From Penicillus capitatus (taxonomy: Eukaryota; Plantae; Chlorophyta), in contig OZ287704.1 in the NCBI GenBank assembly GCA_965649825.1, positions 1,016,935-1,080,934 of the forward strand: a DNA stretch of 64,000 nucleotides. The letters run 5' to 3'. Both the position numbers and the translations under genes were made by a program. Each line of letters begins with the position of its first letter. Position 1 is the first letter of the stretch. Under the pieces are notes generated by a model that saw nothing but the letters and a program-made list of their open reading frames with translations, was not told where the DNA came from and searched no databases. Positions 10,225 to 32,981 of this stretch are shown here, piece after piece.

Positions 10225-10288
10225 CTGAAGAAATGACGTCATTTCAGTCAGACACTATCTTGCAGGACTCGACAGCCCTACTGTAGCC

Positions 10289-10883
10289 ATGAAGTCCGCT
10301 ACGTCTATCAAGAAGGGACGTGTTCGATGGGACGAAGCGAATCTCAGCGAAAATGAACGCGTCAAGAAAGAGATCAACGCGACAGCGATAGAAGAACCCA
10401 AGACGCCTTATCACAGCCCATGTGCCTCGCAGACAGACCTAAGAGGTGGTCAGATAATGACGACAGGCAACGTGCTGATTCTGTCGTGATGCTACAGATT
10501 TGGAAGCGGAGTTGAATGATTATCAGGTACACACTATCGCGCCGATGCGCCATTAGATGTATGCGTGATGGATAGGCACAGCTGGATGAGGAATTAACGA
10601 CGGCAGGATTAATAAACGGAGCTGCTGAACAGTAAGGAGAATGTGTGAGCAGGGTGATCTATGAGTTGTTTGTCTGTTAGCGAAGTGACTATGCAGAATG
10701 GCTCGAAGAGAGTGAGCTTCGACAACACAGCTGAAGGACATGACGCCGTATCTGTCTTCCTGTCATTGCCAAACGCGATGTCCATCTGTTCGTTTGCAGG
10801 AAGAAAAACCTTCTTCCGAGTTTGAAGAGCACAGAAAACAACATTACTCCATGAAAGATGCCTTACAAAAGCAAGCCTTCTGA
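10289..10883 (+). CDS. Protein phosphatase 1 inhibitor-2 (IPP-2 family), spliced
   Basis: IKKGRVRWDEANL, IEEPKTPYH and FEEHRKQHYSM match the three inhibitor-2 motifs. Confidence 0.75.
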
Positions 10884-11118
10884 TCGTTGCCTCTCACGCT
10901 GGACATCTTATTGCCAGAGGGAAGAATCTGGCAGCACAGGAAGACAATGGACAACAAGAATCGGAAGCTTCATTGTGAAAAGTGAATGCTATCACGGGTA
11001 AAGAGGGTGACTGAAGATACACGTCTCATACGTGACTGTGGATATCTATCTGTGTAGTTTTGCTCATCGTTTTGCGTGAAGAATCATAAGTATTTGTTTA
11101 CACACTTTAAATGGCACC

Positions 11119-14100
11119 TCACGTCGCATTAGATGATACGGACGATGATGTTTGGCGGCGCCGGCGCGTTAATCTATAAAGACCGAACATTGCAAGAATA
11201 CCCAGCAAAGCACTCCACTTGGACACAATGAGTGGAGGCGTCCAGTTCACAAAACCTACAACACCATTGTATCAATCTTTTTGTTGACATGGCAGATTAC
11301 CCTGAGGCACACCGAAGGTCAATACAGCAGATTTTTCACTGCTATATGGTGCTCTGCTCAAAAATAAAAAGCGTCGAAGACATTGTGTATGGTGAAGAAG
11401 GCATTACTTATTTGCTCCGAGGATGGATGATTGTTTGGCTGAAAATGGCTCCCCGAAGACATCCGTTACTTTTCTTCCAGAATCTAACAGGTCGTCTGAA
11501 CCTTTGTCTTCCAGTTCTTTTACCTCCATTAGGTCGTTGATCTCCATGATGGGATGGTTCATGTAGCACTGTAAGGGATGGCTCAGGACAAAAGAGAACT
11601 CTGTGAAGTTGACGTCTTCGATCGGCTGCGGAAGATCCTCTGCCTCCAGAGATGCCTTCAGTATGTGATCCTCGCCTGTCAGACTCTGCAGAAGGCTGTT
11701 GTCTTCGTTCTCGTTCACAAAGTCCAGCATCGCATCGAGCAGCTCGAAGCAGTGATCCGACTGGTAACTGGAGTCCAGGCAGTTGGAATCTCCGTAGACG
11801 GCCAGTCTGCCGTTCCCATGGGCGGTCAGGCCCAGAGTGTAGTAGTCGCCGAAGGAGCTGGTCTCCTTGGACGTTTCCTCCAGAGAGAAGTGGTGGGCAA
11901 AGCTGTCAGCAGGCAGCCTTACAATGTTGGCCCCAGAGGAGTACTTCACTCCGCGCTGGCCGCCGATCGCCTGGGTCCCTTTGAGGACGGCGTCCCCGAA
12001 GGCAATCCCAAACTGGCCAAGCAGGTCGTTCAGGCCAGGGATGTTGCCGCCTCCCGTGGCGGGAGTCCACCAGCTGCGCGTGTTGTCATCGAAGAAGCGG
12101 AAGTCCGTGGCCGTCTTGGCATTGTACCACTCGGCGAAGACGATGACGCCGAGTCCCTCTTCCCTCACATCCGCGGCCAGTTTTGCAACCTCCTCCGGAT
12201 AGAAGACGTCTTCGGAGTCGACGATCATCAGCGCCCCGTACTACAGCGAATGGAGTCAGCAGTGTGCCGGACGGCGTCCGGCAGGCAGGACCTGTGATGC
12301 GTTGAAGCAGGTGTAGGGAGAACCCAGGACCTCCAGGTAGTAACCCCTGTCTCGCAGGTGGTCGAACATGTCGTGGAAGTTGGTGTGCGGGTGGTCTCCG
12401 TGCCAGTCCAAGATGTCTCTCTGCACGTCGAGGTTGTCTCGCGGGAAGTAGGCGGGCGGATACTTGACGGAGTGGAACTGGTCCCAGAGCACCCTCTTCT
12501 CTCGGGGAGGCTTCGGAACGATCCTCGCCTTGAACGGCACTCGGACAGTGGACTTCCTCTCCCCCCTCTCGCCCTCGACCGGGGGAGCGACGACGGTGAA
12601 GCGGATCTCTCCCTCGGCGACGCCCGAGTAGGATCGTCCAGCGGACTGGACTCGGACGTAGACGGCCAGGTATCCCGACCAGGGCCACAGGACGTCGCTG
12701 TACTCGAAGTCCATGGAGACGAGCTCTCCTGCCTTGTTGGAGGGAGCGAACTCCGGCGCCCCTTCCAGGACGCCGGTGACGCTGATGCCGTTCAGGATCG
12801 TGGCGTTGACGATCACCGGGACGGCGTCGGCATAGAGAGGCTGCGAGCAGAGGGGCCACATGTAGGGGCAGTCGGTCAGATCCAGGCTGCCTGGAACGAG
12901 GGAGGCCCGGGGCTCGTAGCTCTGCAGGATCTGCATGGACCGGACGAGGTCGATCTTTCCGGCCCCCTGAACGTAGACCGTCTCGCCGTCCAGCCGAGAG
13001 GCGCCCTCGACCAGGGCCTGCTTCATCGAGGCCGGATTGAGCAGGCTCCACCGAGCGCCTTCGGGAACGGTGCTGGCCAACAGAGCCACAGCCCCTGCGG
13101 CGACGGGAGACGCCACGCTCGTTCCCGACAGGCTCTTGCACCCGTCCTGCATCCTCGAGCCGCTCACGTCCTGGGCGTATGCCAGCACATCCGGCTTGAT
13201 GCGACCGTAGCCGATCGGCAGCTCCCAGGTCGACATCCCCCTCGACGAGAAACGCGCCATGCGATCCTCGAAGGTGATACCTCCGATTCCGATGACATCG
13301 TTCTGATCAGCCGGGTTGTTCAGCGTCCCGTACAGAGGTCCATCGTTTCCGATGGCGGACACCATGATGATCCCACTCGATGTGACCTCCAGCACCTGCG
13401 GAGAGAAGAGGCATTGAGAACTGCGACTGCCTCTAGCGATCTCGCCTTCTCGACGAATGGTTGATCGAGGAAGTCCGGCCCGCCGATGCTCAGATTGACG
13501 ATCTGCATCTTCGAGACGATGGCGTAGTTGAAGGCGTCCATGAACCAGGACGTGTAGGAGACCTGGTCGTCCGTGAACACCTTGAACGTGTAGAGCTCGA
13601 CGTCCGGAGCGAATCCAAGACATCCATCGTAGATTCCGGCGATGACGCCGGCCACGAACGAGCCATGTCCCAATCCGTCGCTCAGCGTGTTCTGGTGGGT
13701 CCAGTTCGTGCGTTCCTTGATGTTCTTGACGTGGGGGTGGTTTGCTCGGATGCCGGTGTCGAAAACGCCCACCTTGACCTTTTCGCCCGAGTGTCCCAGA
13801 TTCCAGATCTCGTCCGCGTGCAGCATTCGCGTCACCGATCGGCGGCCGGTTTTTAAGAGGCTCCTCTTCCTCCTCAGCTCTGCCCGGTCTTCGGAATCCG
13901 ATCCATACGTGTAGTCGTCGTCCTCGCTGTCGATCCCGAAAGTCGGACGGGTACGGAATCGACCTGGAGGCTTCTGAATCTTGCACTCCCGATGTCCCTC
14001 TTCTTCCTCCGCGACGTGTGCCAGACTCCGGTGCAGCAGACGGTCTGGGTGGACGTCTCTGACAAAAGGCAGCTTGAGTATGCGTTCCTATACGACTCCG

Positions 14101-14462
14101 ACCTCCCACCAAGGTCCGCTGCGAAGTCGATTCAGATCTACCTGCACGGTTTCTGCAGAGGCTGTCTGGAATCGCACGACGCCGAAGTCTGTCGGAAACG
14201 AGGCAGCTGCGTTGTGTCGCTCGACCCATTTCCACTGCGACTCGTCGTCGCTTAAGACAGCTTCCAGTGCTCGTCTCCAGTGTGCTGCCCTCCGGTATTC
14301 GCGAAAGCGGACGATGTACTGCTGTCCTCCCTCAGAGATGTTCTCTGCACCTAGTTCACTCGAACAGGTACCTTCTTCGGTGGCTGACGATGACGTCAGG
14401 ATGGTTAGACGACTCCATAGCAACAGACAGAGCAAAGTATAGAAGCATCGATAAAGATGCAT
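11119..14462 (-). CDS. SBT6.1: Site-1 protease / subtilisin-like protease SBT6.1 (MBTPS1 ortholog)
   Basis: Signal peptide; catalytic D (VFDTG), H (LGHGSFVAG), oxyanion N (GNDG) and S (SGTSVASP); S1P-specific LWDQFHSVKYPP and DWHGDHPHTNF; C-terminal TM plus RRRR tail. Five introns, one GC-AG (13396-13445). Confidence 0.92.
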
Positions 14463-14860
14463 GCTACAGAATAGTCGACAACAGAATGGAACACGAAACG
14501 TTTCCAAAAATCAGGTCATGGACATTTGAATGTGCATATGGTCGTATCAAGCAAATCAGTCTATTTGTATGCTGTACGGTAGACATCCCGATCTTTAACA
14601 GACCGCTTCTGCCTGTACTTCCTTGCATGTAGACAAGCGGAAATTTGTTCTATACTCCTTAAGCTGATGTTATACTCTGCTGCGCGTCGCTTCCGATCAT
14701 CGAAGATTCCTCGGAAGAAGCCTCAATTCGTTTCATTTTATCTTGTTTTGTTCGCGTTCAGTTTTGCCTCTTTCTCTAACATTCCTTTTCGCCTAGCTTC
14801 CAATCCTTCGAACGCTCCTCATTTCATCTTCCTCCCGTATCGTTAAGAGGGCCGCCTTAC

Positions 14861-15805
14861 CAGAACATCGATGGTCAGACTGAAGGCAGCTGTAATGTAA
14901 GCGGGTGTCAGATTCGTTTTTGGAAACAAGGTAGACCACAGAGCATGGACAAAGAGACTTAGGCCAAGCACAGAGAGAGATGTTTCCCACAAACGGATGA
15001 CCCATGGAGCACGCAACTCCATTTGAGAGATATCCCTGTCCAATCACGCACTGACGCCTGTCACATCAATCACGGCATTGCTTACCGAGTGCGACCGTGC
15101 CGTTGACAAAGGCGCTGATGAGAATGAAGATGAAGACGCCTGTCAGTGTGGCACCATCCAACAGACTAGCCATGTAGATCTATACATCCACGCCGTCGCC
15201 GAGTCAAGAGGGCGGCTGTCGATGGAGGACGGTTAGGCCGACTTGCACAGGTAAGATAAAATTGCTGATAACGCCAATTGTTTGGACGAGCGCCGCTCCA
15301 AATTCTCGTTTCTTGAAGAAACAGCTCATCAGAATGGAATTTGCAGCAGGTGCCGTCAAGAAACCCTAGTCCACACATACATGCCTTCCCTTGACATTTG
15401 CTTGAACAGAGGCAGCTTCCATGACAGGACAGAAAGGGCAAGCAGATTTCCGTTTCTCAAGTGAATAGCATTCGTTCGCAATTGCGGTAGCGAGAGGAAG
15501 AGGAAAGGGAATGTCGAGAGCTGAACGAGATCGTTCGTTGTTTTCGACCACCAATCCTTCTGATCGTCATCATCTACATCCTCATCGCTGTTCGAGTAGC
15601 GCGTCTTCTCACAGTTCTCTTCTGTACAAACATAGCTCTCCCTGTTCGACAGCGCTGCACTCTTCTGTCGACTCATCGATACCACAACACTGGACTGAAA
15701 CAGTCGAACACGGCACTTTGCCGCTTCCAGACGCGAAGCGCGTTCTTTCGCGTAACAACTGCAGCTTTTGATACAGGTGTTGGAGAGCAGACAGGTATCG
15801 GTCAT
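14861..15805 (-). pseudogene. MEX1: MEX1 plastid maltose exporter, N-terminal half only, with lesions
   Basis: Transit-like N-terminus, then PFLFLSLPQLRTNA..GNLLALSVLSWK|GFLT..NSILMSCFFKKREFGAALVQTIGVIS..Q|IYMA..RLWE..LGLS..LWSTLFP, collinear with MEX1 (PFLMLQLPQIILN..GN..ALSAVPWLGMLT..KKRE.EAA.VQTLGV). The intron 1 donor reads CT instead of GT, the frame breaks after intron 3, and the segment ends at a GTAAGG donor (14860) with no C-terminal exons downstream. Confidence 0.75.
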
Positions 15806-18800
15806 CTCTCCCCTACGTTGGTGTCGTCTTCGAGAGGGCCGCACAAGACGCTTTACTGCACAGCCGTATGGCGGCAGCCTGGGCGAGACACCTTTCAGCA
15901 CGATCGGAACGTGGGAGACATACCCAAAGTAGATCTCGAAGTGATCGTGGCACATGAAGTGGATGAGCTTGACTCTGAGCAGCTGTCCTGCATGGCCTCC
16001 GTCGGTCGGAATCTTCAAGTCGTAGCCCTGAACCGTTACTCTGTAGCGAACGCGATCGAATGCGTCTCGCGTACTTGCACTTTGCGTCGCGGCGCTGTGG
16101 CTTCCCCTTTGACCACCCAGTTGTATGCCGCCTTCGAACGGCCTTCGTGTTCATTCGAGTTTAACTCTGGACACGTAGACGCATCCATACGTACAAACGC
16201 ATGTGAGATCGGTCCTCTTTTTCTGCGAGAGGGCAATACCTGCTGGCTCGAGTCGTCGACGGGAGGCGCTTCGTGTCGATATGGGCCGCCTTGTCCGTTC
16301 GCGCTTGTGAGAACAGACGCTCGTCTCTTCGTCGAAGTCGTCCATCTTTAATGGCAAGTAACGTCACCGTCAATGCGTTCCTTGAGTCTTCTCCTGCCCA
16401 CGTGCAGCAATGTGACCCGTTACGCTTGTTTTGTCACAAATCGTCTTTGTCTACAATCACGCAAGACGTGGCTCTGAGCAGCTGTGATGCATTAAAAACA
16501 CTTTGGCTTCTACTTTCTAGAGAATTGTTAGCGCTGGGATAACTCGACAGCGGATGACATTGTGCTTCCCGACGGGCAACAGAGGGTTAGCGAGAAGGTC
16601 AGACATACACCGAAGGACGAAAGCGGAAAACAACGTTCTTTCTAAAAAGAGAAGGAAAACAACTGTTTGCAGAATAACCAATCGAAAGGTGAACAACTCC
16701 TCTAGATTCTTCGCATAGGTATGGTGAACATCGTCACCGAGTCGGAAATGGAATGCATACAATACTATACTTGGAGAGGCATACCTGCTTTGCAAAGTGT
16801 ATTAGCTGGCAACAGTCAAGTTGCGAGTGAAGATTTTTCAGAGTCCCATCGAAACACACATCGATGCCCGCCAGATAGTGTAACTAGCAATTCCTGAAAG
16901 GCCTCCTGGGTGGGGATATATTGAGCGACGCCGGACGGATTCCTTGTCATCGAATCGAACAGAAATTGTGGTGGCCAATGCCTATGAGGCAACTGTCAGA
17001 CAGACCATCCACGAGAACTCTTCTAATGACATGCCAATCGCTAGACACACAATTGTTAAGCACACGCGGTTCTGGCATGCACTGTCACGCATCCTCTGCC
17101 TTGCGGCGATCATCCACATCTTCTCAGCCATTGTCCAGGTAAGGCTGCTTCGAATTCTGTTACCATCTGAGCATTCGAGATTTCCAGCCGTCACTCCAGC
17201 TATAGAGAAGGAACGGGATCTAAGAGAACAAACTTGCCGATCTCGATGACACCGAGATCAGACTTTCCTCACAGACAGTCTTGCTGGACAGAAGCCACTT
17301 CTGTGGGCTTGACCTGTCTCCTGTCCGTGCCGCGAAGAGGCATTCCGTGTGCTCTCAACTCGACTCCATGTCAAAGGCCGTTGCCTCCGGCGCCTGTGAA
17401 GACAATCTCCGTTCCACTGAGCCTTGGAGCGCTGCCTCAACGCCAAGTCGACGACTCGTGGCACGCGCCTCACAGTGTAACCCATGTGCATCTTGGCCCT
17501 TGTCGTACAGGATCGGGGGTGAATTTGCCAACGGTCTCTGGAATTCACGGTTGCGTATACTGAATCTGTACGCGTCCCCCGCTTCAACGACGTCTGCTGA
17601 AGGTGCGAACCGACCCACTTACTCACTTCAGCAGGTTGCATTCTCGTCTTCAAGACTAACACACACCATTCCGTCGTCACATTTCTCAGTCTCTCAGTGC
17701 ATGAGCTTCTCCAGACGGCCCTGACAGAACTGGTTGGCCGTCTTTGGGTTACGATGGGAACTGCTCGACGACTGCTCTCGATGCACCTTCCCCTTTTCTT
17801 CAGTACATCCAAAAAGCACAGGTACCTATGGCTTGTGAAACTACTGTCTTGCCTTCTTAGGGATGGCGATGTCCTCATCCCTATTGAGAGGAATGGCATT
17901 GCTTCAGCTACACCACATCCGGCAGGGGGGGTACAATGATCCCGTCACAGAGTGTCTATTTCACATGAGACGGTGGCACACTTGACGCCGTCTCGAACTG
18001 TATAGCAGCCAGGTCTTTAGATGCAATGCAGTGCTTGTATTGCTCACACTGAGGAGACTGGCACATCGAGACGATCCCTCTTCGTGTAAACATTGCCTTT
18101 GGTTGCATTGCGAAGAGCTGTCTACCTTTTCACTGACGGGAGAGCATCAATGGTATAGAATGACGTTCTGAACTCGCATGTACTGCAAACAATCACACAT
18201 GTAACACAAATGTTCGTGTTATCCTCCAACACTCGCTCCAGTCTCTCACTGTCCTCTCTTCCTTTTCCAGGGATTCGGGAAATTGCTACGATGTGAGAGT
18301 GGTCTCTTCACCGCGTATTAACATTATAACGATCTAACGCGTGCACTCCGACGCTACTTTGACATCAGAGCTCCTCTGAATCTTAAAACGTGTTCACAGC
18401 ATCTGAGTTCGGCCATACAAAATATCCATAAATGTAAATCCGGTTATCTCGGCTGCTGCAACGATACTGGCAGGTAGGTCCTCTGCCGTATAACCAGCCA
18501 CCACTCCAGATCTCCACCTCAGAAAGCATGAGAAGATGATTGTATCATCGAACACTCTCATGCACATATCACTCGTCCTCTGCGCTGTTCCCGACCTAAA
18601 CTGTCTCTGAGCATAACTCTAGCAAATCAACTGCTCCAGAACACATCTGCTTTGCTAACCTGAAAAACACAAACGACTCAGATCTTTCGAGATCTCACTC
18701 TAATGCAGCGATTTCCAGGATTCTCTCACTTTTTACGCACTAGCGAACTGTCCTCGGCCAGAAGAGCGTATCTGCTAACATCCAAAATGCCAGAGTCGCA

Positions 18801-18872
18801 CCGGCCTGTCCGCAGCCCGACCGTCACTCTCCGAGCCCGTCACCCTGCGCAATACAACTGGACGAGCGAACA

Positions 18873-20695
18873 ATGTCGGTTGACAGCTTTCTTTCGCTGA
18901 GGGCCGCGCATGCGCCGCCACTCCGAGTGCCCATGCAGGACGACGACGGCTGCAGCTCGACTGCAGACGATGCTTCGGGGCTTCTGCGAGCGTCCAGCTC
19001 GATGGAGAAGGATGCCGACAGAAAGGAATCTGTGCCGCTGCTCTCCGGTGAACGACTTCTCCGGTTACTCGACCCCAACAGCCACCCACCCCCAGAGGCC
19101 AGAGACCTCTCACGTCCGTGTCTTCTGACCGTTAGTCGGCAACCGAGGCGGCAAAAGGACGTTCCCTTGAGGCGTCTGAGCTTCTATCGGTTTTCTGCGC
19201 GCGTTTCTACTCAACATGGACTGCGAGACCGCCACACCATGCGCAAACGACAGCAAGTACTCTTTCCCCGGAAAGAGGTAAGTGTTCTCCGTCATCAGAC
19301 GCTGCCGCCGAGACGCATTACGGCTTCTGCGTCACGGGCCGACTTTTCCCGCGCTATCGCGTTCAGGGAGAGCCTTTTCGCTCTGCGAACGCCGGAAGCC
19401 GCAGAAGCGCTAGTGGCTATCCGGTCGCTCAGTATGCGGCTCTTCCTGAACGCGATAGCGCATTGTTTCTGTCCATCCCTGCCGTCGCCCCCCCCCCTAC
19501 AGACACCCTGCAGTGCATCTAACCCCTTGTGTGCCTGCAGTTTTGCGGAAATGACCTTGGGGGAGGTCATGGGGAAACACCCCCCAGAGGGGTTCAGGGG
19601 GCTGCCGGACGAGGAGAGGCGAGAGTTGTTCTGGGTCTTGAAGGCCCAGTCAACGGAGGAGATGGCACCCAGGGACGAGCCATCTGGCTGGTTTGGCCCA
19701 CCGCCTGGCCAAACCAGCCAGGAAGCTACAATGAGAGCGCGCCCACGTCGTATTTCCGCAGAGGAACGACGTCGGCGCCTCTCTTCACGCCAGTCAGCTG
19801 GCAACGGCGTCCCGGAGGTAAGCCTAGATTCCACACACGACGCGACTCTTCATGTTCCTTCTGTTTTCCAGGACAATCCTCCATCGCTATCTGTGCCGCA
19901 GCCGCCATGCCTACCGCCGCAGACATCCGAGCATCAGGCTCCGCGGCCATGCCCACCGCCGCAGACATCCGCGCAACAGGCGCCGCCGCTGTTCCCGTCG
20001 CGGCCTTGCATGTATTCGTCGCCCTCGCCCTACCCAGTCTGGCCCGACGAGCTCTTGCCAGCGGCGCAGGCCTACGCGCAAGAGGCGCAGCCGCTTTTTC
20101 CCCGCGGCCATGCATGTTCTCATCGCCCTCGCCGCTGCCAGTCTGGCCGGATCATCTTCTGCCGGCGGCGCAGGCCTACGCGCATCTGGCGCAGCCGCCT
20201 TTTCCCCCGCGGCCATGCATCTTCTCCTCGCCCTCGCCGCTGCCAGTCTGGCCGGATCATCTTCTGCCGGCGGCGCAGGCATACGCGCATCTGGCGCAGC
20301 CGCTGTTCCCGTCGCGGCCTTACATCTTCTCCTCGCCCTCGCCGCTGCCAGTCTGGCCGGATCATCTTCTGCCGGCGGCGCAGGCCTACGCGCAAGAGGC
20401 GCAGCCGCTGTTCCCGTCGCGGCCATGCATGTTTTCATCCCCCTCGCCGCAGCCAGTCTGGCCAGATCATCTTCTGCCGGCGGCGCAGGCATACGCGCAT
20501 CAGGCGCAGCCGCTTTTTCCTCCGCGGCCATGCATGTTTTCATCCCCCTCGCCGCAGCCAGTCTGGCCAGATCATCTCTTGCCGGCGGCGCAGGCATACG
20601 CGCATCAGGCGCAGCCGCTTTTTCCTCCGCGGCCATGCATGTTCTCATCGCCCTCGCCCTACCCAGTCTGGCCGGAAGAGCCCTCTTTCTGTTGA
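18873..20695 (+). CDS. GC-rich Pro-rich protein with C-terminal 35-aa repeats; one -1 frame break near 20100
   Basis: The 705-aa ORF and the 388-aa ORF join at a 1-nt deletion at the end of repeat unit 1. An in-frame 54-nt GT-AG intron lies at 19818-19871. Many differences between repeat units are third-position in the MFSSPSP frame. No family recognised. Confidence 0.5.
20010..20680 (+). repeat. 105-bp tandem repeat, 6 full units plus a partial unit (MFSSPSPxPVWPDHLLPAAQAYAxxAQPLFPxRPC)
   Basis: Units start near 20010, 20114, 20219, 20324, 20429, 20534 and 20639. Confidence 0.95.
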
Positions 20696-21130
20696 GTTTT
20701 TTTTTCGTGGGGATGAAAAAAGTTTAAAAGAAATAAAAAGTTTTCTTTTGTTTTTCTGGGCGCGGTGTCTTGACTACTGCTGCTCTGCTGTTTTCTTTTT
20801 TGTGACTTTTGGAGCGTCTCTACATTCGTTTTCGTCATCGTGCACGGGACTGCATTGCCTATTCCTAATGTGTGCACGTTTATTGCGATCTGGATGTTAC
20901 GAGGGACCAGACCTAGCAACTAACGTTCTGTTTTGTTTTTGTTGTTTCAGCTGCTGCATAGCTGTTGTTTTGTGCTGGCGACATTTATAGATGGGAGATC
21001 GACTCTTATGTTTGTGCATTTCAGTAATAATTGCGGTCGGACATGTTTTTGAGCTGCGGCGGCTCATATGGCGGCGGCACATGCTTTTACTGTGTGGCGG
21101 GGAGTACATTTGAGTGGTCATTTCTGTTTT

Positions 21131-21417
21131 GTCCGGATCTGTGGAGGTGGATGTCGAGGTGTCCGGATCTGTGGAGGTGGATGTCGAGGTGTCCGGATCT
21201 GTGGAGGTGGATGTCGAGGTGTCCGGATCTGTGGAGGTGGATGTCGAGGTGTCCGGATCTGTGGAGGTGGATGTCGAGGTGTCCGGATCTGTGGAGGTGG
21301 ATGTCGAGGTGTCCGGATCTGTGGAGGTGGATGTCGAGGTGTCCGGATCTGTGGAGGTGGATGTCGAGGTGTCCGGATCTGTGGAGGTGGATGTCGAGGT
21401 GTCCGGATCTGTGGAGG
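21131..21417. repeat. Perfect 30-bp minisatellite (GTCCGGATCTGTGGAGGTGGATGTCGAGGT) x9 plus 17 nt
   Basis: Identical units read directly from the sequence; no spacers. Confidence 0.97.
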
Positions 21418-21969
21418 CTTTGTGGTATACAAAATGTGAGGTAGTGCTCCGTTTGCTGGAAGGACCTGGGATGAGTGATGAATCTGTCTCTACGACAGTG
21501 GCTGGGAGCAATACAGTATTCAGTTGATGGCACGGTAAATGACATCATGCTGAATCGATGTCTGGAGTAGAAGCTAATGAAGTGCCTTCTCTGCAGGGTG
21601 GTGGATGCATCAATGAGCTTTTTTCTGGAATACGAAATTGACAAACCGGATTCGCTTACCAAGGCATTCCGAAAACGAAGGAGATTTTGCAGCCCCTGAA
21701 GAATGAGGCGAGAATCGGCCAGCCAGAAATCATGTGAAACATCAAGGTACAGTTATCCTGTTATGACAATGGAATGTTTAGATCTATAATCAGATGCAAG
21801 AGGGGATTGGATCCTGTTGATACATTCCGAAGAGATGATATCCAGGAAGGAATGATCGGCGATTCAAGATCGTCATCCGACATCCTAAAGAGAATTCTGG
21901 ACATACAGCCCAGGACACTAAAAACAATGACCATTCCAGAAATGCAACAAGACTGAAGACATCTCCATT

Positions 21970-22780
21970 GAAGGACACAGTTTGGTTTTCGCGCACGACA
22001 GATACGTATTCACACATTCCTTTCTGCAAAGCTTGTGGACATTTATCTTACACGATGTTCCCCGTCCATCTGGGAATCTGAGGTTCCCAAAGAGGTCCTT
22101 TCATTTTAACATTTCGTGCTGAGTGGTGCTCTGTTCTGCAGAAAACTTCATTGTCCGAGAAAGATGACATGACGCGAAGAGCATGCAGAACACACCACAG
22201 TTTCCATCCTGCATAAGCTCGGTTGAATCAGCTGGAAGGTCTACATGCGCTCGGTTGAATCAGCTTCTGCAATTCGAGTTCGTCTGACCAAGGAGCCCCT
22301 TCGATGCGTACGTCAGCGCATAGCATGCTGCACTCACCAACACATTTCTCAAGGTAATCTGCAGATACTTCATGCTCCTTCCTTACACTTGATTCGACAG
22401 GCATTCAAAGAGGCAATTTCGAAGGAAGTGGTAGCAGTTGCTTGGATACACGACGGAGACTGTTTGATTGAGAGAAGATACTTTGGATGTAGTCTCTTCT
22501 ACAAGGCTTTTATTACCGTCTCATACGAGGTGATGGATGAGACACAAAGGCATCGATCGCAACGATGGTAGACATCATTGATGGATGAGACTGGAAATCC
22601 TGCATCTCGTAATGCTATGGCATCGAGTGTTCTCTGGTGTCTGGACTGGCAGAAAGGAGAAGAAGGCTTAGAACACAGACAACGACTGACGATGCCACTC
22701 TGGATTGAAGAGAGAGAGATCAATCCTGCATCGCCTAGGTTCATGCATTCGGACAACGATGGTGATTCAACCAGAGGCCG
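21970..22780 (+). mobile_element. Probable heavily decayed non-LTR (LINE/L1-like) reverse transcriptase remnant
   Basis: Collinear degraded motifs across frameshifts: AHDRY..FLQSLWTFILHDV (cf. PGPDG..F..W...DV), RIACC/LTNTFLKVI (cf. RPI.L.N...KVI), LIRQAF (cf. LI...Q.AF), FYKAFITVSYE (cf. D..KAFD.V), GLEHRQ (cf. GLRQG). No intact YADD. Confidence 0.4.
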
Positions 22781-24181
22781 TTGATCGCATCCCAACAGAC
22801 CGGATACATCAGGGAGAGAACTGGAGTGAATTCTTACCAGCAGTTCACAAGATGACCTGGATCAGATTCCGAGGCATGAGGGCTCTGAACTCTAAAGGAT
22901 CGCAGACATTCACAAGCATCCCTGACTGCAAGATCATCATCAGGACGAAAAAGACTCGTTGATAGCAGAGTCAACTGTTTTTCGAGTTGGTCAGTCTGAC
23001 AGTGGGCTGAAAGCTGCGTGGGGTCGAGAGACTTGCCTGACCCCGAGAAAAACTGCCTATTCTCATTCCAGGTATGTTCACTCTCACCTTTGCCTTGAGG
23101 TAGACTGCATCTCGCAGAATCAAAGCTGCGCTGAAGAGGGACGCACACAGCATGACGTCGGTTGATGTGGGGACCAGTTGTCATCTGAATTGCTTCCGTG
23201 CCTTTCCAGAGCATCCTCGAGAAGGGACAGATTCTCTCTAGAGGAGATCAACCACTCTGAAAGAAATGAGAGGAATCTACTCTGACGGAGGAGGTGATGA
23301 TTTGGAAGCGATGCTGAATCGGATGAGCGATCGAGACAATTCCTGCAGCCAGTTCTCCCAGTCAAGGTCACGGAGTTGCAGACCAAGTCTGGATGACGGC
23401 CATCGCATATGCGGAGAAGCATGTGTGACTGTGCTGCATCAGATTCTCCCGAAGCACCACCATCGGATTCGTCAGAGAAGTGTGCCCGGGAATGCAGTCA
23501 AGTCAGATGCCTGCCTGAGTTATCCTAATGCGGCTCATCCATCCGAAGACTCGGCAGACGTTGCCGATGCATCCTCAGGGCACAGAACAAGACTCCAGGA
23601 TGATTCGAAGAGTGACAACCGCTCTTCCACAGGGCAGGGACGAGTTGATGGTGTGTCTCTGCCATAGCAGAGAGAAGCACCACTCGACAAAATGATCACT
23701 GCAATGACATGTCTCATCAGGTAAAAAAATGCCACATATGCTCTTGTGCTCAAGGCCACTGTGCCATTAGGCTGAGATGAGGAAGAAGCGTCAGAAGGAG
23801 AGAGATCGATATATGGGATGTGCCTAGCGGAAGAAGAACTTCCTCTTCACCTTCCTGACCGAATCGTGAGCAGACTCACTGACAGACTGTCAAGCGAAGA
23901 ACACAGCAAATGCGGCAACTGGACAGACACCCACAGAGAATGCAACCATCAAATGCAGGAGGCAAAAAGTAGAAAGGCTTCTTGCGAGGCAGACAGTGCT
24001 CATGTTCGAGAAGCCCATGAGCAGTCTTGGATAACTTACCTTGCACTGATCCACCCAACCCAACCCACTTCACCCCACCCCACCCCCGGCAGCGGCAGCC
24101 GCATCAGGGAGGATGGCTGGGCGACAGGGAGAGCAGAGACCGTGACATTGGGCAGCCACGTGATTCGGTCGATGTACTCAG

Positions 24182-24727
24182 GTAAGCGTCCTTTGGATCG
24201 GCATCCAGGGCCGTCTCTTCTGTCCCTTTTCTCTCCTTCTCCCCTGGATGCCCGTCTTCTTCGATCCGGGTAACGGAATCGGCATGTGTGTTTTCTTCTT
24301 GCCTGCCTGTGGTTTGTTTTTCTCCAGTGTGAGCAATGTTTACTTTAGAGCTCGCATTGACTGATCCATTCTCTGTCCATTGCTTCCTGCCTAGAAGTTT
24401 TCTAGTTTGCATGACCATTTCTATGCGATTTTCTTTTTTGTGCATGCCTGCAGTTATCAGTGTGTGTCCCTTTGTCTACTTCTTCTACTCTGTGATCATT
24501 TTTACTTTTCTTGTGTCCTGTCGCCGATTCCGTTATCCCTCATTGCATGTCTCTTTGCTCTTTCCTTTCTTTGTTGTGTTCTTTTCCACTGTGTTGTGCA
24601 AGTGCCGGTGTAATGTTTCCTCTGTCCTGTTCTTCCTGTGTTTGTTTTTGTTTCTTTGCTTTTCTTGTGTTTTCATTCATTTTCTACTTGGTCCTTTTTT
24701 GGACCTCCTATGTGCATGTCCGCGCAG
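24182..24727 (+). repeat. T-rich structured module, copy 1 (intron-like, GT...AG)
   Basis: GTAAGC start; inverted repeat GGCATCCAGGG (24200) / CCCTGGATGCC (24242); long T-rich body; GGTCC-T6-GGACC hairpin (24690-24705); ends TGCATGTCCGCGCAG. Confidence 0.7.
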
Positions 24728-24743
24728 CGCGGCGGATCCTAGG

Positions 24744-25121
24744 ATGATTCCACGATTCGCCAATCACACTGGGAGTTCTCACACTTCCAGGGCTGCTTTT
24801 TGGGAGAGGTCACTGGTGCTCTGCCAGGTCATGTCGAGCGGCGCCGCATGCCACAGGTATGAATCCTATCTCACTCAAATGTCACATCTGACTCTGCCTT
24901 CGCAGATGGGGGTTTGACAGTACTCTCAAAGGAGAGAGTTACAGACAAGGATCTCCTCCTATCGCATTGACTATAGAGGTAATCCAACATAGCGATTCTT
25001 TGTCTACATTCGTCTGTATCGGTTTTACTAGGAGGATGATGATTGGCATGCAAGAATCAAAGAAAGAGGATCAGCCTCGACATCCGCAAGGGAGTGTCGC
25101 AAATTTCGGAGTGTGGCTTGA
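24744..25121 (+). CDS. Small hypothetical spliced ORF (~90 aa) between the two modules
   Basis: GT-AG introns of typical size (24857-24905, 49 nt; 24979-25031, 53 nt) keep one open frame: MIPRFANH...CHR|WGFDSTLKGE...IE|EDDDWHAR...SVA*. Confidence 0.35.
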
Positions 25122-25132
25122 TCAATCCTCCG

Positions 25133-25585
25133 GTGATGGCTTTCAGATCGGCATCCAGGCCCTCTTTTCCATTTCTATTTTGTTTCTCTCTCCCCCTGGA
25201 TGCCAGTTTTCCTCTTCTTGGGCAACAGAGTCTCCTTTTCTTTTCTGATGTGTGTCCATTTCCCTATTTTCTGATTTTGCTACTTTGTGCATTTCCCTGA
25301 GTTTATATCATTTGTGTTTGTTTGTGCGCATTATGAGATTCTTGCATCTGTGTTTTATGTGTATTCTCTTACCTTGTATCACACCTGTGTCCTTTTCTGG
25401 GACCTGTTGACCCTTTTCTGAACTGTTCTTGTACAATTGTCTTCTTTCCTTCTGTTTCAAACTTGCCTGTTTCATTTTGAGTCTGCAAGAGAGTTTTTCA
25501 TTTTTTGTGTGTCTCTGTCCTTTCTCATTTTTGTGTTTTTTCATTCTTGGTCCCTTTTTGGACCCTTAACTGCATGTCCGCGCAC
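25133..25585 (+). repeat. T-rich structured module, copy 2
   Basis: GTGATG start; GGCATCCAGG (25150) / CCTGGATGCC (25195); T-rich body; GGTCCCTTTTTGGACC (25549-25564); TGCATGTCCGCGCAC (AG of copy 1 is AC here). Confidence 0.7.
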
Positions 25586-26544
25586 GCGCCGGGTCTGAAA
25601 GCCACGCCGGAGATGGTTAGGCCCACTTGCACCCTCAAAACTCTCCCACACTGCCCAAGCGGACAGATCCCAACATGCATGCCAACGACACAATCCTCCT
25701 CCATTGCAGCTGTCGACCATGTATCATCAAGTAAACGCTCTCTTTTCTTTTTATCACTCTTATCAATCTTACGCCACAGGAGAGATGACTCGTTCCTCCA
25801 ATGAAGATGTTTGAAAGACCTTGATCTGAAGTCTGTATACAAGTGATTGATTGAGCTCTCTACCTTAGCTCATAGATTCTTTTTGCCTCCGTTGATTCTC
25901 TTTGCAAAAAGAGAAAGGAATTGATTCTCTATTGGCAAACTGCCAGTTGCCGCTGCTGTGGTTTTCGTTAATCTGTCAGTGAGTGATCTCACGAGTTTTG
26001 GTTTCTAGTAGCAGGCGATATCTTATTCTACTGTGACGATACACGATTCAATATTAGCTGTTTGGCATGTTCCTTTTCTACATTTGTTTCATTCTCGGTT
26101 TTCTTCTTTTCGCATTCTCTACCCACGTTGTTGGTTCAATATGACTGCCGACTTCGTTACATGACTGATGGCCGTTCTAACTGGCTCCCCAGTTTTCTGG
26201 GTCAATGAAGAACGCGATAAACGATTACCAAACGGCAGCCTCTTGATCCGTTTCGCGTCTTCAAGGGCAGCATTCCACATCTGCGCAATTTTTTCTTTCG
26301 TCACAAAAAAAATTGATTATTGAAGACATGTGTGCTTTCTAAGCACGTGCGAGACTCGATTGTATGCGGTAAAGCAATTCACTTTTAGCACCTTTATTTA
26401 CAATGTGCCATCACCAGACGCCTCATGCTTATCAAACAAGCAGAGGTTTTTGTTAAACAGACTCTGTTTGCGGACGTAGATCATTCCTACGGTTAAATGT
26501 TCGAATGGACTGCACAGAATCATGATAGACGACATCGAATTCTA

Positions 26545-27102
26545 TCAGTGTAAGAAATACGTGTGGAACAGTGCCTCTGACGAATGACTAACATTACTCG
26601 CTTTGGCTTCCATTGAGAAAACAAAGAAGAAATAAAGCGCTACACCAATGGAGATCAAATAAAAAAGCGTGACACTCAGATAACATGACCTACAGGGACA
26701 GACAGATGGACATCATAAATGTGTGAGCAACAGAGGGCGTGCGTACGTACCCTGTTTGGAGTCCAGCCACATACAGACAAAGCAATTGGGCCCATCCCAT
26801 CATAGATGATCCCCACAACGTTCCTGTCACGCATCCTGTCACATCAACAAAAGATGTTTGGCGAAATGCGCACACACATGTCAACCAGATTTTGTCTCTT
26901 GTGTGGAGGGCACGTGGAACCATGAGTCCGTTACCAGCCATAGCCAGGAGGCTGAAATTCAGAGAGAGTCCAACAAGACTGGAGGGATTTGCAAAGTTGC
27001 AGACAAGTTGACCGATGGGCTGAAATGCGAAAAGAAGGGTCGCTGTCCATGCAGAAATCCCATTCCAGGTTTTCTTAATTGCTGGACTTAATGCATCCAA
27101 TG
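26545..27102 (-). pseudogene. MEX1: MEX1 plastid maltose exporter, C-terminal half only
   Basis: Starts at an orphan acceptor (CTGTAG, 27104-27103). ISAWTATLLFAFQPIGQLVCNFANP..LVGLS..LLAMAGNGLMVPRALHTRDKIWLT..TLWG..GWAQLLCLY matches MEX1 (SGWTATLMFMWMP..QMWTNF.NP...GNGLMIPRALFIRD.MWLTG). Splicing the intron after WLT gives T+GA = TGA where MEX1 has Gly. The terminal exon and stop are followed by TGTAA (26398-26402). Confidence 0.8.
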
Positions 27103-27524
27103 CTACAGACACGGCGCATTCTACATGGCACAATGATGGCCTCTTTCTTCGTTTCACTTCAGAATGTAGGATGTATTGGGCGGGACTCAAGTCATCACAG
27201 TTTTGTCCAGGAAAGCCTGATAACATATAGAAGCATCGCCTCCTCTTGCATCAGAAACGCTGAATCGGTCATGCGCGTGCGAAACTGATCTCGTTAGAGA
27301 TCGAACTATGTTCTGCGAAATCTGATAATCATCGAATCGCTAAACAATCTCTTTTGCACATATCCCTTTTAACCTGACCCCGTGTCTTCAACATAATTCG
27401 TGAAGCATTCATTCTAGAAGTCTGTTTCGAGGGGGGCGACGGTCGGAGGACGTTAAATCTGGCAAATGTGCTTGGTATTGTTCTTGAAACGCCTGTCACA
27501 TCCAACGACTCCAGTAAAGCGTCC

Positions 27525-28212
27525 ATGTGCGCGATCACCGTCAATGTCGCGCCACTTCGAGGCGCAGACCGATGGACCAGCCGGCTGCCATTTTCTCCCT
27601 CTCCTTCCAGATCAACGTGGACATTTCGCTGTCTTCCCCGCCTTCTCTCTTTTTCGACCCGTCCCGATCGCCATACCTTCATCGTCCAGGCCGGAGCAGA
27701 TACAGAGGACAACACGTCAACAGAGAAGGTAATGCTAAACCACCGCGTTACTGACGACCAAATAAAAGCAAAACAGACACAGCATTCCATGTACAGGAGT
27801 CGGTCGCTGACCCAAAAGACATAAAGGAGGAAGAAGAAGAGGAAGATCCCATTTGGGTTCGACGAGAACGGCTGCAGGAGCTTCAAAAGGAAGAAGCATC
27901 TGAGACCTTTGAGCTCCCTTTCTTCGTCTCCCTGTTACTGTCTGCTGTTATTGCCATCGCTGCTGTTGGATCTGTATTCGAAATCGCCAACAAGCATGCC
28001 CTCTTTGGAGTCATACCACCAGAGAATCCTCTGTGGCTACCGATTCTTGCATTCTTTGCTCTGACAGGCTTGCCGGTCTCGGGTACGAAATGACCGACCT
28101 CGAAAAAGCGTCCTTGCTGAGCAGGGAATTGTATCTAGGATATTTTTTCTTTTCGTCTGTGGCTGCTGCGAACAAATTGGCGGATCAGATGGACAGGATC
28201 GACAACGCCTGA
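27525..28212 (+). CDS. Predicted chloroplast membrane protein, At1g50020-like
   Basis: Transit-like N-terminus; two introns; LPFFVSLLLSAVIAIAAVGSVFEIANK..FGV..P...FFALTGLP....SVAAANK matches that plant family as recalled. Confidence 0.7.
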
Positions 28213-28430
28213 ATACTAAACAATCCTCATTCTACTGGCACAGTTTCTCATGCATTTCTTTAAATTCTCGGAAAAGCCTCTCTCTGGTGATTATACGAGA
28301 CAAAAGAGATTCTGAACGATACATCTGCATCCATTCGGCTAGCCAGGCATGCATTTGTCCATGCATCACATTTTGCAGACATAATGGGTGACGTGACGTT
28401 TAGCGTTGCTGCCATTGCGTTGTCGTCGCG

Positions 28431-31400
28431 ATGCACGCGTCGGTGTCCTGGTATCGACTATGGATGCGCGTGACACCAATGTCGCGGTCAAAAGGAAACC
28501 TGTGTGCTCCTTTGCGTCCGTTGTCCTCAGGCGGACTGCTCTCGATTCTCTCTCAGCACAGCAAAACAAAGAAAGAGCGTTCGACACCTTCGGCAGAGTC
28601 TAAGGGAGAGAAGCCATTAAACGGTTTGGGCATCCTTGGAGAGATCGCTCGACAACGCGTCCGCGAGAACATCCCGACACCAGCGATGACTAATGGCTAC
28701 GAAAGGCCGCCAGAGATGAGACCACCATTACAGAAGAGACCTCCTCCAGTGTATGAAGATCCTTTGCGTGAACGCGCACCGACAAGGAATGCACCGACAA
28801 GGAATTGGCAGCAACCGCGGGTTGAGCCCGAACCCGAGCCCGAACGTGTGTCTTGACTTTTGACCAGAGATCTGAGATGTTGTGATGGCGGGTGTTGTGC
28901 AGAAGTGAATGGATTTCGTACAAAGTATGACGATCGATGGGCACGTTTAATGAAAAAAGCGCCAGTGAATGGCAAAGCACAGCAACAGGCACCAAGACCC
29001 TCTCTTCCATCATTGGAGAAGGCACATCAACGAAAACAACCAACCAAACCACAACAAAAAATCATAGCGATATCAGATGATATCACAACAAAGCTCTTGG
29101 CACATAAACTGGGTGAGAAATGCTGTCTTCAGAAACAGTGTTACTGGAACGGTGGAGTTAGGGGTGACCATCCCAAAACTGGAGGACGTATTGGCATCGT
29201 TAGGCGAGGCACCGGAATCGCACGAAGACATGTTGCATATCATTTGTGGATGTGAGATGAGGGCGGTTGTGTTCTAGACTGTCGATGGATGCGGCCGAGT
29301 TAGCTGCAGGAGAGTTTGGAACGATCGTCAAGAAAATCCGTTCAAACAGTCATCCAATAGCTAGAAAGCGTCAACAGCAATCGCGTTGTCTGTAGATGTG
29401 GCGGCAGGGCAGACGATCACACGTCCTCCGGTCGTGACCGTCATGGGTCATGTCGATCATGGAAAAGTGAACCATTGCTTAAAGGCCTGCTGACTTGTTC
29501 GATCGCATTTAGACGACCCTGCTCGATGCACTGCGTCATACATCTGTCGCTGCTGGCGAAGCTGGAGGCATTACTCAAGTATGCTGTGTCTGCACAGATC
29601 TGGATGTCTAGTGAAAAGGGCTCTGTAACTGTCGTAGCATATTGGAGCATTTGAAGTTCGTTTGGAAGGATCGGAGGACACATTGACGTTTCTCGACACA
29701 CCTGGGCACGCAGCTTTTTCGTCGATGCGCGCTCGGGGAGCCAGGGTTACGGACCTGGTCGTTCTTGTGGTGGCAGCAGACGACGGAGTGATGCCACAGA
29801 CAAAAGAGTGTCTCAAGCTTATACGCGAGGCCGGATGCCAATTTGTGGTCGCCGTCACCAAATGTGATCTCCCACAGGCACGCACCTCCCATCCACACGA
29901 TCCTCATTACTTATCAGTTGCCATACGATTTCAGGCGAATGTCGATAAGGTTAAGTCAGAGCTCGGTGCGGAGTCGGTGGAACTGGAGGAGTTTGGTGGA
30001 CACGTTCAACTTGTCCCTGTCGCCGCTCCCGTTGGACAAGGATTGGAAGAACTCCAGGAAGCCTTACTTCTTCAGGTGGAGCTCTCTTCAAGGTTTCCTC
30101 GTATGAGCAACGTGTCTTCACATCATGTCTTCTTTTTGTGTGGCAGGCGACAAATGTTGAACTGGCAGTACGGACGGATGTTCCTGCAACGGCCGTTGTG
30201 GTGGAAGCCAACAAAGACAAAGGATTGGGCTCAGTGGCGACGGTGATTGTAACGGGTGGGACACTCAAACAGGGTCAGCCTGTTGTGGTGGGTCATCACT
30301 GGGGAAAAATCCGTCAACTGCGAACACCGTCTGGCGAATTGGCGAAAGAAGTGACACCTGGAAGACCTGTCGAAATCTCTGGCTTGCGCAGTGTCCCGCA
30401 ACCAGGCGACGAATTGATGGTCATGTGCTCAAAACAGCAGACATAGGGAGAAGAGTTTCTGCCTGTTAAGGTTGTTCGAGATGAAGATCGGGCGAAGAGA
30501 GTGAGCATGGCACGACTGCAACGATTAGGGATGTCATTATCAGGCGGATTGCGATCCGAACAGGAGAAAGAGTATATATCCATTCATTGTGTTCTTTTAT
30601 TGGATAAGGGGTGTGGACAGGACAAAGACGGTACCTTTCTTGATTAAGGCAGATACACAAGGAACTGTCGAAGCTGTGGCACGCGCCGTCGAAGGACTGG
30701 CGAGCGAAGTGGTAAGGCATGGCGTTTCTCTACATCTGTCATAAGGTCATCGACAGATCGCTCCCGAAATTATAACGTGTGCCGTCGGGAATGTCTCTGA
30801 AGCGGATGTCATGATGGCAGAGGCAACAAATGCTCAGATCCTGGCCTTCAATGTGAAAGTGTTGGGTCATGCTGTCGAGATTACTGCCAAGGACAAGAAC
30901 GTCGAGATCCATCAGCACACGGTTATCTACCATTTACTCGATACCGTCGGACAAAGCCTTCTTGACCGTGCGCCCCTCTGTGAGGACGAGCAGGTTCTTG
31001 GAGAGGCACTGGTTCAACAAATCTTCAACATCAAATGCAAACAGTATCTCACACAACGCACACCATCTCACTCTTTCGCCTCTGCTTTTCAGATCGAAAT
31101 CGCTTTTGAATGTGGCCGGATGCGTTGTCACTTCGGGACACGTGCAGAAATCCGAAGCCCTGTTCCGTGTGCAACGATCCGATCAAATTCTCTTTGAAGG
31201 ACCCTGTACCTCACTCAAGCGACACAAACTGGATGTCGATCGCGTTGGCAAAGGAATGGAGTGTGGTATACTACTGAATCCCTTTAATCAGACAGCAGAG
31301 GTCCCTGTCCTTCATCTCCAGTCACCCTCCAGATCTCTCCCTTTGCCGACAGGGCGATGTGATTCGGGCGATTCTCAAGAAGAAAAGAAAGCCGAAGACG

Positions 31401-31457
31401 GAGACCGTTGTGGGAGGCGGAATAAGGATCGTGGAATTTTCGAATGCATCTTGTTGA
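28431..31457 (+). CDS. Organellar (probably mitochondrial) translation initiation factor IF-2, many short introns
   Basis: [15 protein letters not shown]|TTLLD, GGITQ|[45 protein letters not shown] and a C-terminal KPK..GG.IRI tail like plant mitochondrial IF2. One GC-AG intron (29878-29934). Confidence 0.9.
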
Positions 31458-31495
31458 CGTCATTCTTTCAGACTCGGATTGATTTAAGATTTCGA

Positions 31496-32864: not shown

Positions 32865-32981
32865 ATCTGACGTCGTCCGTCCATCTGTTTTTGTGGCATA
32901 ATGTACATATGATGAACGATGTGTTGCGCGAAGAGAGCTGTCACATCACCTGTCGCATCCGACAACGGTCGTCGATTCGAG

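Follow-up and report, generated by a model that had tools for sequence, protein, structure and literature searches.

A Circularly Permuted MEX1 Pseudogene in a Green-Algal Duplicative Insertion, Probably Derived from a Circular DNA Intermediate

The Permuted MEX1 Locus

MEX1 (maltose excess 1) is a plastid-envelope maltose exporter whose role is known from Arabidopsis. In the stretch of Penicillus capitatus contig OZ287704.1 analysed here (the window; 64 kb of eukaryotic DNA, ~50% GC, zero Ns) a MEX1 gene is present as two halves in permuted order: exons 5-7 (27102-26545; the C-half) are located ~11 kb upstream of exons 1-4 (15805-14861; the N-half), with both halves on the minus strand. The halves form the two ends of a 12.3-kb insertion that also carries the 5' end of an SMC6-like gene and a 9.8-kb segment termed X' (Table 1); the MEX1 copy is a dead gene, and its exon order is probably the product of a DNA circle cut inside an intron. 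The first exon of an SBT6.1/S1P-like gene begins ~400 nucleotides (nt) past the orphan donor of the N-half.

When the exon peptides are searched against the window by tblastn, each MEX1 piece gives one match with E-values from 1e-13 to 1e-47; the N-half is matched at 15553-15419 (N1), 15365-15243 (N2), 15179-15084 (N3), and 15019-14861 (N4), and the C-half at 27103-26879 (C1), 26824-26750 (C2), and 26688-26548 (C3). As a protein query the N-half has six matching proteins, all six of which carry PF28566; these include the full-length colinear protein P0002 (401 aa), P0004, which is g2895.t1 of Caulerpa lentillifera, and an open reading frame (ORF) of 84% identity on a 1.6-Mb ENA metagenome contig. 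Identity as a MEX1 family member is taken from the precomputed PF28566 (MEX1_N) annotation of these homologues; the window exon peptides share 92-100% identity with the intact gene in close relatives, from which the pseudo-exon coordinates in Table 1 are projected. Both the tblastn matches and the family homology agree with the initial annotation, made from the sequence alone, which had placed two MEX1 halves on the minus strand at these positions; the AG acceptor, stop codon, and TGTAA it described for the C-half and the ATG and GT donor it described for the N-half are all present.

Table 1. Features of the permuted MEX1 locus, in window coordinates
Feature	Position	Strand	Remarks
Whole insertion	14839..27134	-	12.3 kb; order: MEX1 3' half, X', SMC6 5' fragment, MEX1 5' half
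Block A	14839..15903	-	L002 10113-11181 vs window 15903-14839, blastn 97.0%
Block C	15904..16381	-	L002 16559-17053 vs window 16381-15887, blastn 95.2%
X' segment	16382..26227		9.8 kb between blocks B and C
Block B	26228..27134	-	L002 11180-12090 vs window 27134-26228, blastn 95.6%
SMC6 intron 2 / MEX1 5' head-to-tail junction	15887..15903	-	blastn overlap, alignment
Pseudo-exon 1	15416..15805	-	ATG at 15805; donor 15415-15414 is CT vs GT in L001, L002, L006
Pseudo-exon 2	15243..15365	-	
Pseudo-exon 3	15086..15179	-	
Pseudo-exon 4	14861..15035	-	orphan GT donor 14860-14859; 4-nt deletion between 15016 and 15015
Pseudo-exon 5	26878..27102	-	AG acceptor 27104-27103; 4-nt deletion between 27100 and 27099
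Pseudo-exon 6	26751..26823	-	
Pseudo-exon 7	26545..26689	-	natural stop; TGTAA ~140 nt further, at about 26402-26398

The Intact Gene and the Donor Locus

The window was compared with related algal contigs from ENA metagenome assemblies. L001 and L003 come from ERZ26696514 and L002 from ERZ25074695 (ctg340196, 31x); L004/L006 are from ctg340197 of ERZ25074695 (32x) and therefore share a sample with L002, and L005/L007 belong to the ERZ26696514 lineage, whose members are more distant relatives than L004/L006. With the first-exon ORF of SBT6.1 as query, orthologues are found in both samples. In ERZ26696514 the MEX1 locus (L001/L003) and the IF-2/SBT6.1 locus (L005/L007) each occur on two diverged contigs with a coverage of 147-183x; these pairs are either two haplotypes or two closely related strains.

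L001, L002, and L003 carry a colinear MEX1 gene at a conserved locus, with the common order Adaptin / protein kinase / Homeobox-KN / MEX1 / N6-adenine-methylase / DJ-1. All seven exon peptides are colinear within 1.6 kb in both L001 and L002; the L002 gene model, with seven exons separated by six GT-AG introns (50-63 nt), encodes a protein of 410 aa, the gene of L001 is equally intact, and L003 has the start of exon 5 without the deletion found in the window. The intact protein of L002 is 64% identical to Caulerpa lentillifera g2895.t1, 43% identical to a protein of Bryopsis sp. KO-2023, and 38% identical to one of Ulva mutabilis, and it also matches Myrmecia; the matches from Caulerpa, Bryopsis, Myrmecia, and Ulva carry PF28566. 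These identities place the organism among the ulvophytes, near the Bryopsidales. An intact MEX1 elsewhere, for which the initial annotation proposed a search, is thus found on relatives' contigs in L001 and L002.

The introns retained in the window lie at 15415-15366, 15242-15180, 15085-15036, 26877-26824, and 26750-26690. Several MEX1 introns end in a TGAYRTGACAG-like motif, and intron 5 is a multiple of 3 in length and contains no stop codon, allowing in-frame readthrough. Non-canonical splicing, which the CT donor of intron 1 and the in-frame intron 5 could suggest, is rejected, since the intact genes have GT-AG borders at all six introns.

When the 20.6-kb locus of L002 is aligned to the window by blastn, exactly three blocks (A, B, and C) and nothing else are recovered; L001 gives the identical three-block pattern at 85-90%, and tblastx gives no more. 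Block A spans from ~98 nt before the MEX1 ATG through exons 1-4 to the first ~22 nt of intron 4, and block B contains the 3' part of intron 4, exons 5-7, and ~320 nt beyond the stop codon; together, blocks A and B make up the whole MEX1 gene. Block C holds the 5' end of an SMC6-like gene: ~35 nt of sequence ahead of the ATG, exons 1-2 (which end ..HFMCHDHFEIYFG), and ~20 nt of intron 2; the continuation of the SMC6 Walker A motif (NFVSGKNGSGKSAILQAI) is present only in the translation of L002, not in block C of the window. SMC6 lies 4.5 kb downstream of MEX1 in the relatives, and the donor of the inserted pieces is the conserved locus Homeobox-KN / MEX1 / N6-adenine-methylase / DJ-1 / SMC6.

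The break in MEX1 separates two adjacent bases midway through the 51-nt intron 4, with both intron parts kept: ~22 nt from the intron start are retained in the N-half and ~29-31 nt from its end in the C-half. In the donor, the outer ends of the insert are consequently neighbours, block A closing at L002 position 11181 and block B opening at 11180 with a 2-nt AT overlap. The initial annotation had placed the break within one intron and considered the halves to join almost without a gap; the fit is better than this, as the halves rebuild the 51-nt intron 4 of L002.

An alternative origin by tandem duplication with reciprocal loss, also raised in the initial annotation, predicts further MEX1 remnants in the window, and neither a remnant nor a second copy was found by tblastn and tblastx across the 64 kb; this origin is rejected because the donor copy has been retained rather than lost. 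One genome very probably holds both the intact MEX1 (L002) and the permuted copy (L006), because the two share a sample, coverage, and adjacent contig numbers, and the genome of the window would be expected to keep an intact MEX1 as well. In the ERZ26696514 lineage, a single 1.61-Mb contig carries both L007 and the canonical locus L001, on opposite strands and separated by ~280 kb.

The Empty Site and the Inserted Sequence

The insertion is flanked by IF-2 on one side (>27134) and by SBT6.1 on the other (<14839). In L005/L007 this site is empty and IF-2 and SBT6.1 are adjacent, ~3 kb apart; L007 3-9622 corresponds to window 36739-27131 and L007 9634-20438 to window 14832-4059, and by alignment the spacer of L005 is colinear with the joined flanks of the window. 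Because of this empty site the segment at 14839-27134 is recognized as a 12.3-kb duplicative insertion. At the insertion site ~11 nt of the target are missing in the window, and the left junction displays ATTG(G) microhomology. A small membrane-protein-like (At1g50020-like) gene at window ~27700-28400 apparently lies between IF-2 and the insertion site and is conserved in L005/L007; the synteny of this gene and SBT6.1, which the initial annotation suggested examining in relatives, appears to be kept in both contigs without the insert.

L004/L006 are colinear with window 33460-4089 through IF-2, the C-half, X', the SMC6 fragment with the N-half, and SBT6.1. The window and L006 diverge by 1-5% and come from independent assemblies of different samples, and all five junctions (27134, 26228, 16381, 15903, and 14839) are identical in the two. 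A misordering of contig pieces during assembly, which the initial annotation had named as a refuting outcome and which the window alone would be insufficient to exclude, is ruled out because the independent assembly from another sample has the same permuted order; the lack of Ns in the window and the private lesions carried by the pieces relative to the canonical copy also argue against it, and the chance of such an artefact is considered negligible. From these sequence comparisons, the insertion postdates the split from the ERZ26696514 lineage and predates the separation of the window and L006 lineages.

Within the insert, SMC6 intron 2 (L002 ~17037) is joined head-to-tail to position -98 of MEX1 (L002 10113), and the junction is identical in L006. 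The join is situated in a ~30-nt patch of imperfect similarity between the two donor sequences, with a local alignment score that ranks among the top 1.2% for random pairs. Divergence between the window and L006 jumps at the left edge of the insert, from ~0.7% on the IF-2 side (27135-33460, including intergenic sequence) to ~3% across the insert and the SBT6.1 side (13315-27134); it is possible that this step is a recombination boundary between haplotypes.

The X' segment has no similarity by blastn to L001, L002, or the rest of the window and is single-copy among these three. It contains a tandem repeat at 19960-20676 (6.8 copies of a 105-nt unit, 89% matches) and a second, perfect one at 21130-21417 (9.6 copies of a 30-nt unit); the length of the 30-nt array differs by about 360 nt between the window and L006. 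A hypervariable stretch at 18500-20000 has 19-24% mismatches to L006, with 2-5% elsewhere in the insert; a repetitive, proline-rich ORF of 705 codons (18873-20990, plus strand) that is not conserved begins within this stretch. No X' ORF is conserved in comparison to L006, as nonsynonymous (N) changes equal or exceed synonymous (S) ones and frameshifts and stops occur, and the entire insert is unconstrained DNA. In 59 ORF pieces from X' no Pfam domain of note was found; the weak matches (DUF4248, Bactofilin, and others; E >= 2e-4, one piece each) are considered noise from repetitive ORFs.

Capture of gene fragments by a transposon, in which MEX1 and SMC6 pieces would have been taken up inside X' by a Helitron, a Pack-MULE-like element, or a tyrosine-recombinase element with a circular intermediate, would account for an insert that is a mosaic of gene fragments and anonymous DNA, and a further gene-fragment copy (the 5' end of SBT6.1 in L008, described below) is found nearby in the sister genome. 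However, the repeat search of the insert revealed no long terminal repeats (LTRs) or terminal inverted repeats (TIRs), nor any inverted or long direct terminal repeats, and Pfam searches of the 59 ORF pieces gave no transposase, reverse-transcriptase, Rep-helicase, or recombinase domain. Furthermore, X' is not repeated among the window, L001, and L002, and the ends of the insert are MEX1 intron sequence rather than element termini; transposon capture is accordingly held to be improbable.

Decay of the Permuted Copy

One lesion is common to the window and L006: a 4-nt deletion (one unit of TGGATGGATG) immediately after the exon-5 acceptor, at 27100/27099. The intact genes read TAG and then CAT TGG ATG GAT GCA at this position (HWMDA, phase 0). 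The mismatch between a phase-0 donor and a phase-1 acceptor, as described in the initial annotation, is real and exists because of this deletion; the AAG acceptor proposed there as the only one to restore the frame is unneeded, since the frame problem is the deletion itself.

Three lesions are restricted to the window. The intron-1 donor has changed from GT to CT, the 4-nt deletion in exon 4 causes a frameshift with a stop at codon 228, and the last base of exon 5 (26878) is T, compared to G in all others, which creates a TGA across the exon 5/exon 6 junction. L006 has its own set: exon 2 has lost 4 nt at its end, exon 4 has gained an A, and the intron-6 donor has changed from GT to CT. With substitutions assigned by parsimony, the branches of the permuted copy carry 21 N and 11 S changes versus 15 N and 41 S on the canonical branches (Fisher p = 6e-4); the L002 branch has a single change, which is synonymous. 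Unlike L001 and L002, the window copy has no continuous ~400-aa coding sequence and its splice sites are not all usable; its N:S ratio is neutral, with no sign of purifying selection. The permuted MEX1 copy is a pseudogene, and the element as a whole is very likely a non-functional duplicative insertion.

A functional split gene has to be weighed against these lesions: the halves could be expressed separately and rejoined by trans- or back-splicing, or serve as two half-transporters, as the initial annotation had considered for the MEX1 of this organism. Most of the exon sequence is kept in both halves, and the N-half has its ATG and the C-half its stop and TGTAA. Nevertheless, the window carries frameshifts, a nonsense codon, and a destroyed donor, L006 carries other lesions, and one frameshift is shared by both; in addition, the N:S ratio is neutral, the sister genome with the same insert has an intact colinear MEX1 (L002), and SBT6.1 begins ~400 nt behind the orphan donor of the N-half. 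A working split gene is regarded as highly improbable. A false lead is removed in this way: there is no evidence for a split or trans-spliced maltose exporter, nor any reason to expect a starch or maltose phenotype. Annotators should mark half-gene models beside SBT6.1 and IF-2 as pseudogenes.

Probable Origin by a Circle Cut inside an Intron

The insertion probably arose through a circular DNA intermediate. To form the circle, a site ~20 nt into SMC6 intron 2 would have been joined head-to-tail to a site ~98 nt upstream of the MEX1 start, at the short homeologous patch; besides a complete MEX1 gene, the final circle would have included the 5' fragment of SMC6 and, as X', 9.8 kb of further DNA. 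A single cut of this circle in the middle of MEX1 intron 4, without sequence loss, would produce a linear molecule that could be end-joined into a chromosomal break, using the ATTG(G) microhomology at the left junction and with loss of the ~11 nt of target. As the cut lies inside MEX1, the two halves come to stand at opposite ends of the insert, exons 5-7 upstream and exons 1-4 downstream, with no change in their relative orientation. This copy would have been dead on arrival and decaying since, with the donor gene left intact and under purifying selection.

The insert matches the expectation for a cut circle in several features: the order B...C-A in one orientation, insert ends that abut in the donor with nothing lost between them, the head-to-tail SMC6/MEX1 junction, and an insertion far from the donor in the opposite chromosomal orientation. 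A DNA circle opened inside an intron and reintegrated was already put forward in the initial annotation from the order of the halves, and it is now the favoured reading on the strength of the empty site in L005/L007, the intact donor in L001-L003, the donor-adjacent ends, and the head-to-tail junction.

Several points weigh against this origin. The circular topology is inferred from the permutation alone. Donor positions 12090-16559 (4.5 kb, with the methylase and DJ-1) are absent from the insert and the unrelated 9.8-kb X' is found instead; this replacement implies either a chimeric circle from two loci, an intermediate locus, or a later replacement, and X' requires at least two further junctions to be explained, so the order of events that would have brought it in is conjectural. 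L002 and L006 are assigned to one genome by their common sample, their equal coverage, and the adjacent numbering of their contigs, and the intact copy is known from the sister genome, not from that of the window. Finally, 14 quartet-informative sites group the window with L006, but seven group L006 with L002. The seven sites, at which L006 and L002 differ from the window and L001, are all transitions and are scattered (L002 10258, 10645, 10976, 11176, 11411, 11984, and 11991); ectopic gene conversion involving the pseudogene and its intact counterpart may account for them, as may recurrent transitions.

The main rival is replication-based template switching without a free circle, as in microhomology-mediated break-induced replication or fork stalling and template switching (MMBIR/FoSTeS-type). 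A broken end in the IF-2/SBT6.1 spacer would here copy MEX1 from intron 4 onward, then the source of X', the 5' end of SMC6, and the 5' region of MEX1, before returning to the spacer; in a variant, the donor would be looped but not excised. Junctions with only microhomology or short homeology and an insert that is a mosaic of at least three sources are consistent with such a path, and a replicative interaction with a circularised donor has been proposed by Chicote et al. for similar human cases (PMC7450558). However, copying would have to end at the exact intron-4 nucleotide where it began, which is expected in ~4% of cases under random stitching of four fragments (a rough estimate of our own), whereas a single cut of a circle gives matching intron-4 ends automatically. 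Template switching is considered unlikely, and the circle cut inside intron 4 is preferred.

Both the MEX1 and SMC6 fragments start near the 5' ends of their genes, for which an origin from mRNA was also considered; it is rejected because introns are retained and block B extends ~170 nt past the TGTAA. A further fragment of this kind occurs in L008 (ERZ25074695 ctg340197, 200633-221007), where a partial, inverted copy of the SBT6.1 5' end is found at about 9980-12235, ~27 kb from the full gene, which this contig also carries. Its similarity to SBT6.1 starts ~25 nt before the ATG, the sequence upstream is unrelated, and no MEX1 piece accompanies it. The SMC6 and SBT6.1 copies both start near gene starts with their introns kept, and the SMC6 fragment (starting at -35) together with the L008 copy suggests that fragments of gene 5' ends have been duplicated repeatedly in the sister genome. 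That this siphonous (bryopsidalean-type) green alga routinely shuffles gene fragments through small DNA circles or related end-joining is a speculative extension and is itself doubtful; if true, exon shuffling and gene permutation in coenocytic algae would have a recurrent source that has so far gone uncharacterised.

Comparison with Known Systems

The event belongs to the known class of circle-mediated duplications, of which the colour-sidedness KIT translocations of cattle are another example; to our knowledge, duplications of this circle type have not been described previously in this green-algal lineage. The locus is a natural gene circularly permuted by duplicative reinsertion and resolved to the base pair, known together with its donor, the acceptor site in its empty state, and two descendants that have decayed independently; it provides a worked example of how circle-mediated duplication yields a permuted exon order. 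It is considered a clean, well-documented algal example rather than a new biological principle.

The closest parallels are human segmental duplications in which a change from A-B to B-A order has been attributed to circular DNA (Chicote et al. 2020, PMC7450558; Takahashi & Innan 2020, PMC7188851). Both systems feature a distant duplicative insertion with reversed block order in the same orientation, insert ends that adjoin one another in the donor, closure by a head-to-tail junction, a retained donor, and junctions with only microhomology or short indels. Unlike the human cases, the insert of the window is much smaller (12.3 kb) and is found in a green alga, the cut lies inside a 51-nt intron so that a single gene is circularly permuted, and the middle 4.5 kb of the donor is replaced by 9.8 kb of foreign DNA.

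With respect to the MEX1 family (PF28566), the window pieces are homologous by descent; however, in contrast to working members the copy is bisected and permuted, with two frameshifts, a nonsense codon, a dead donor, and neutral evolution. As in duplicated (non-processed) pseudogenes, introns are kept, the copy was disrupted on arrival, and independent lesions have accumulated in each lineage; ordinary duplicated pseudogenes are colinear with their parent, whereas this copy is circularly permuted with its two ends 10 kb apart. The arrangement of a 3' half encoded upstream of a 5' half on the same strand is shared with the circularly permuted tRNA genes of red and green algae (PMC3978253). In those tRNA genes the halves are intact, form the sole copy, and are processed via a circular RNA, whereas the MEX1 halves of the window are both broken and an intact copy exists in the sister genome.

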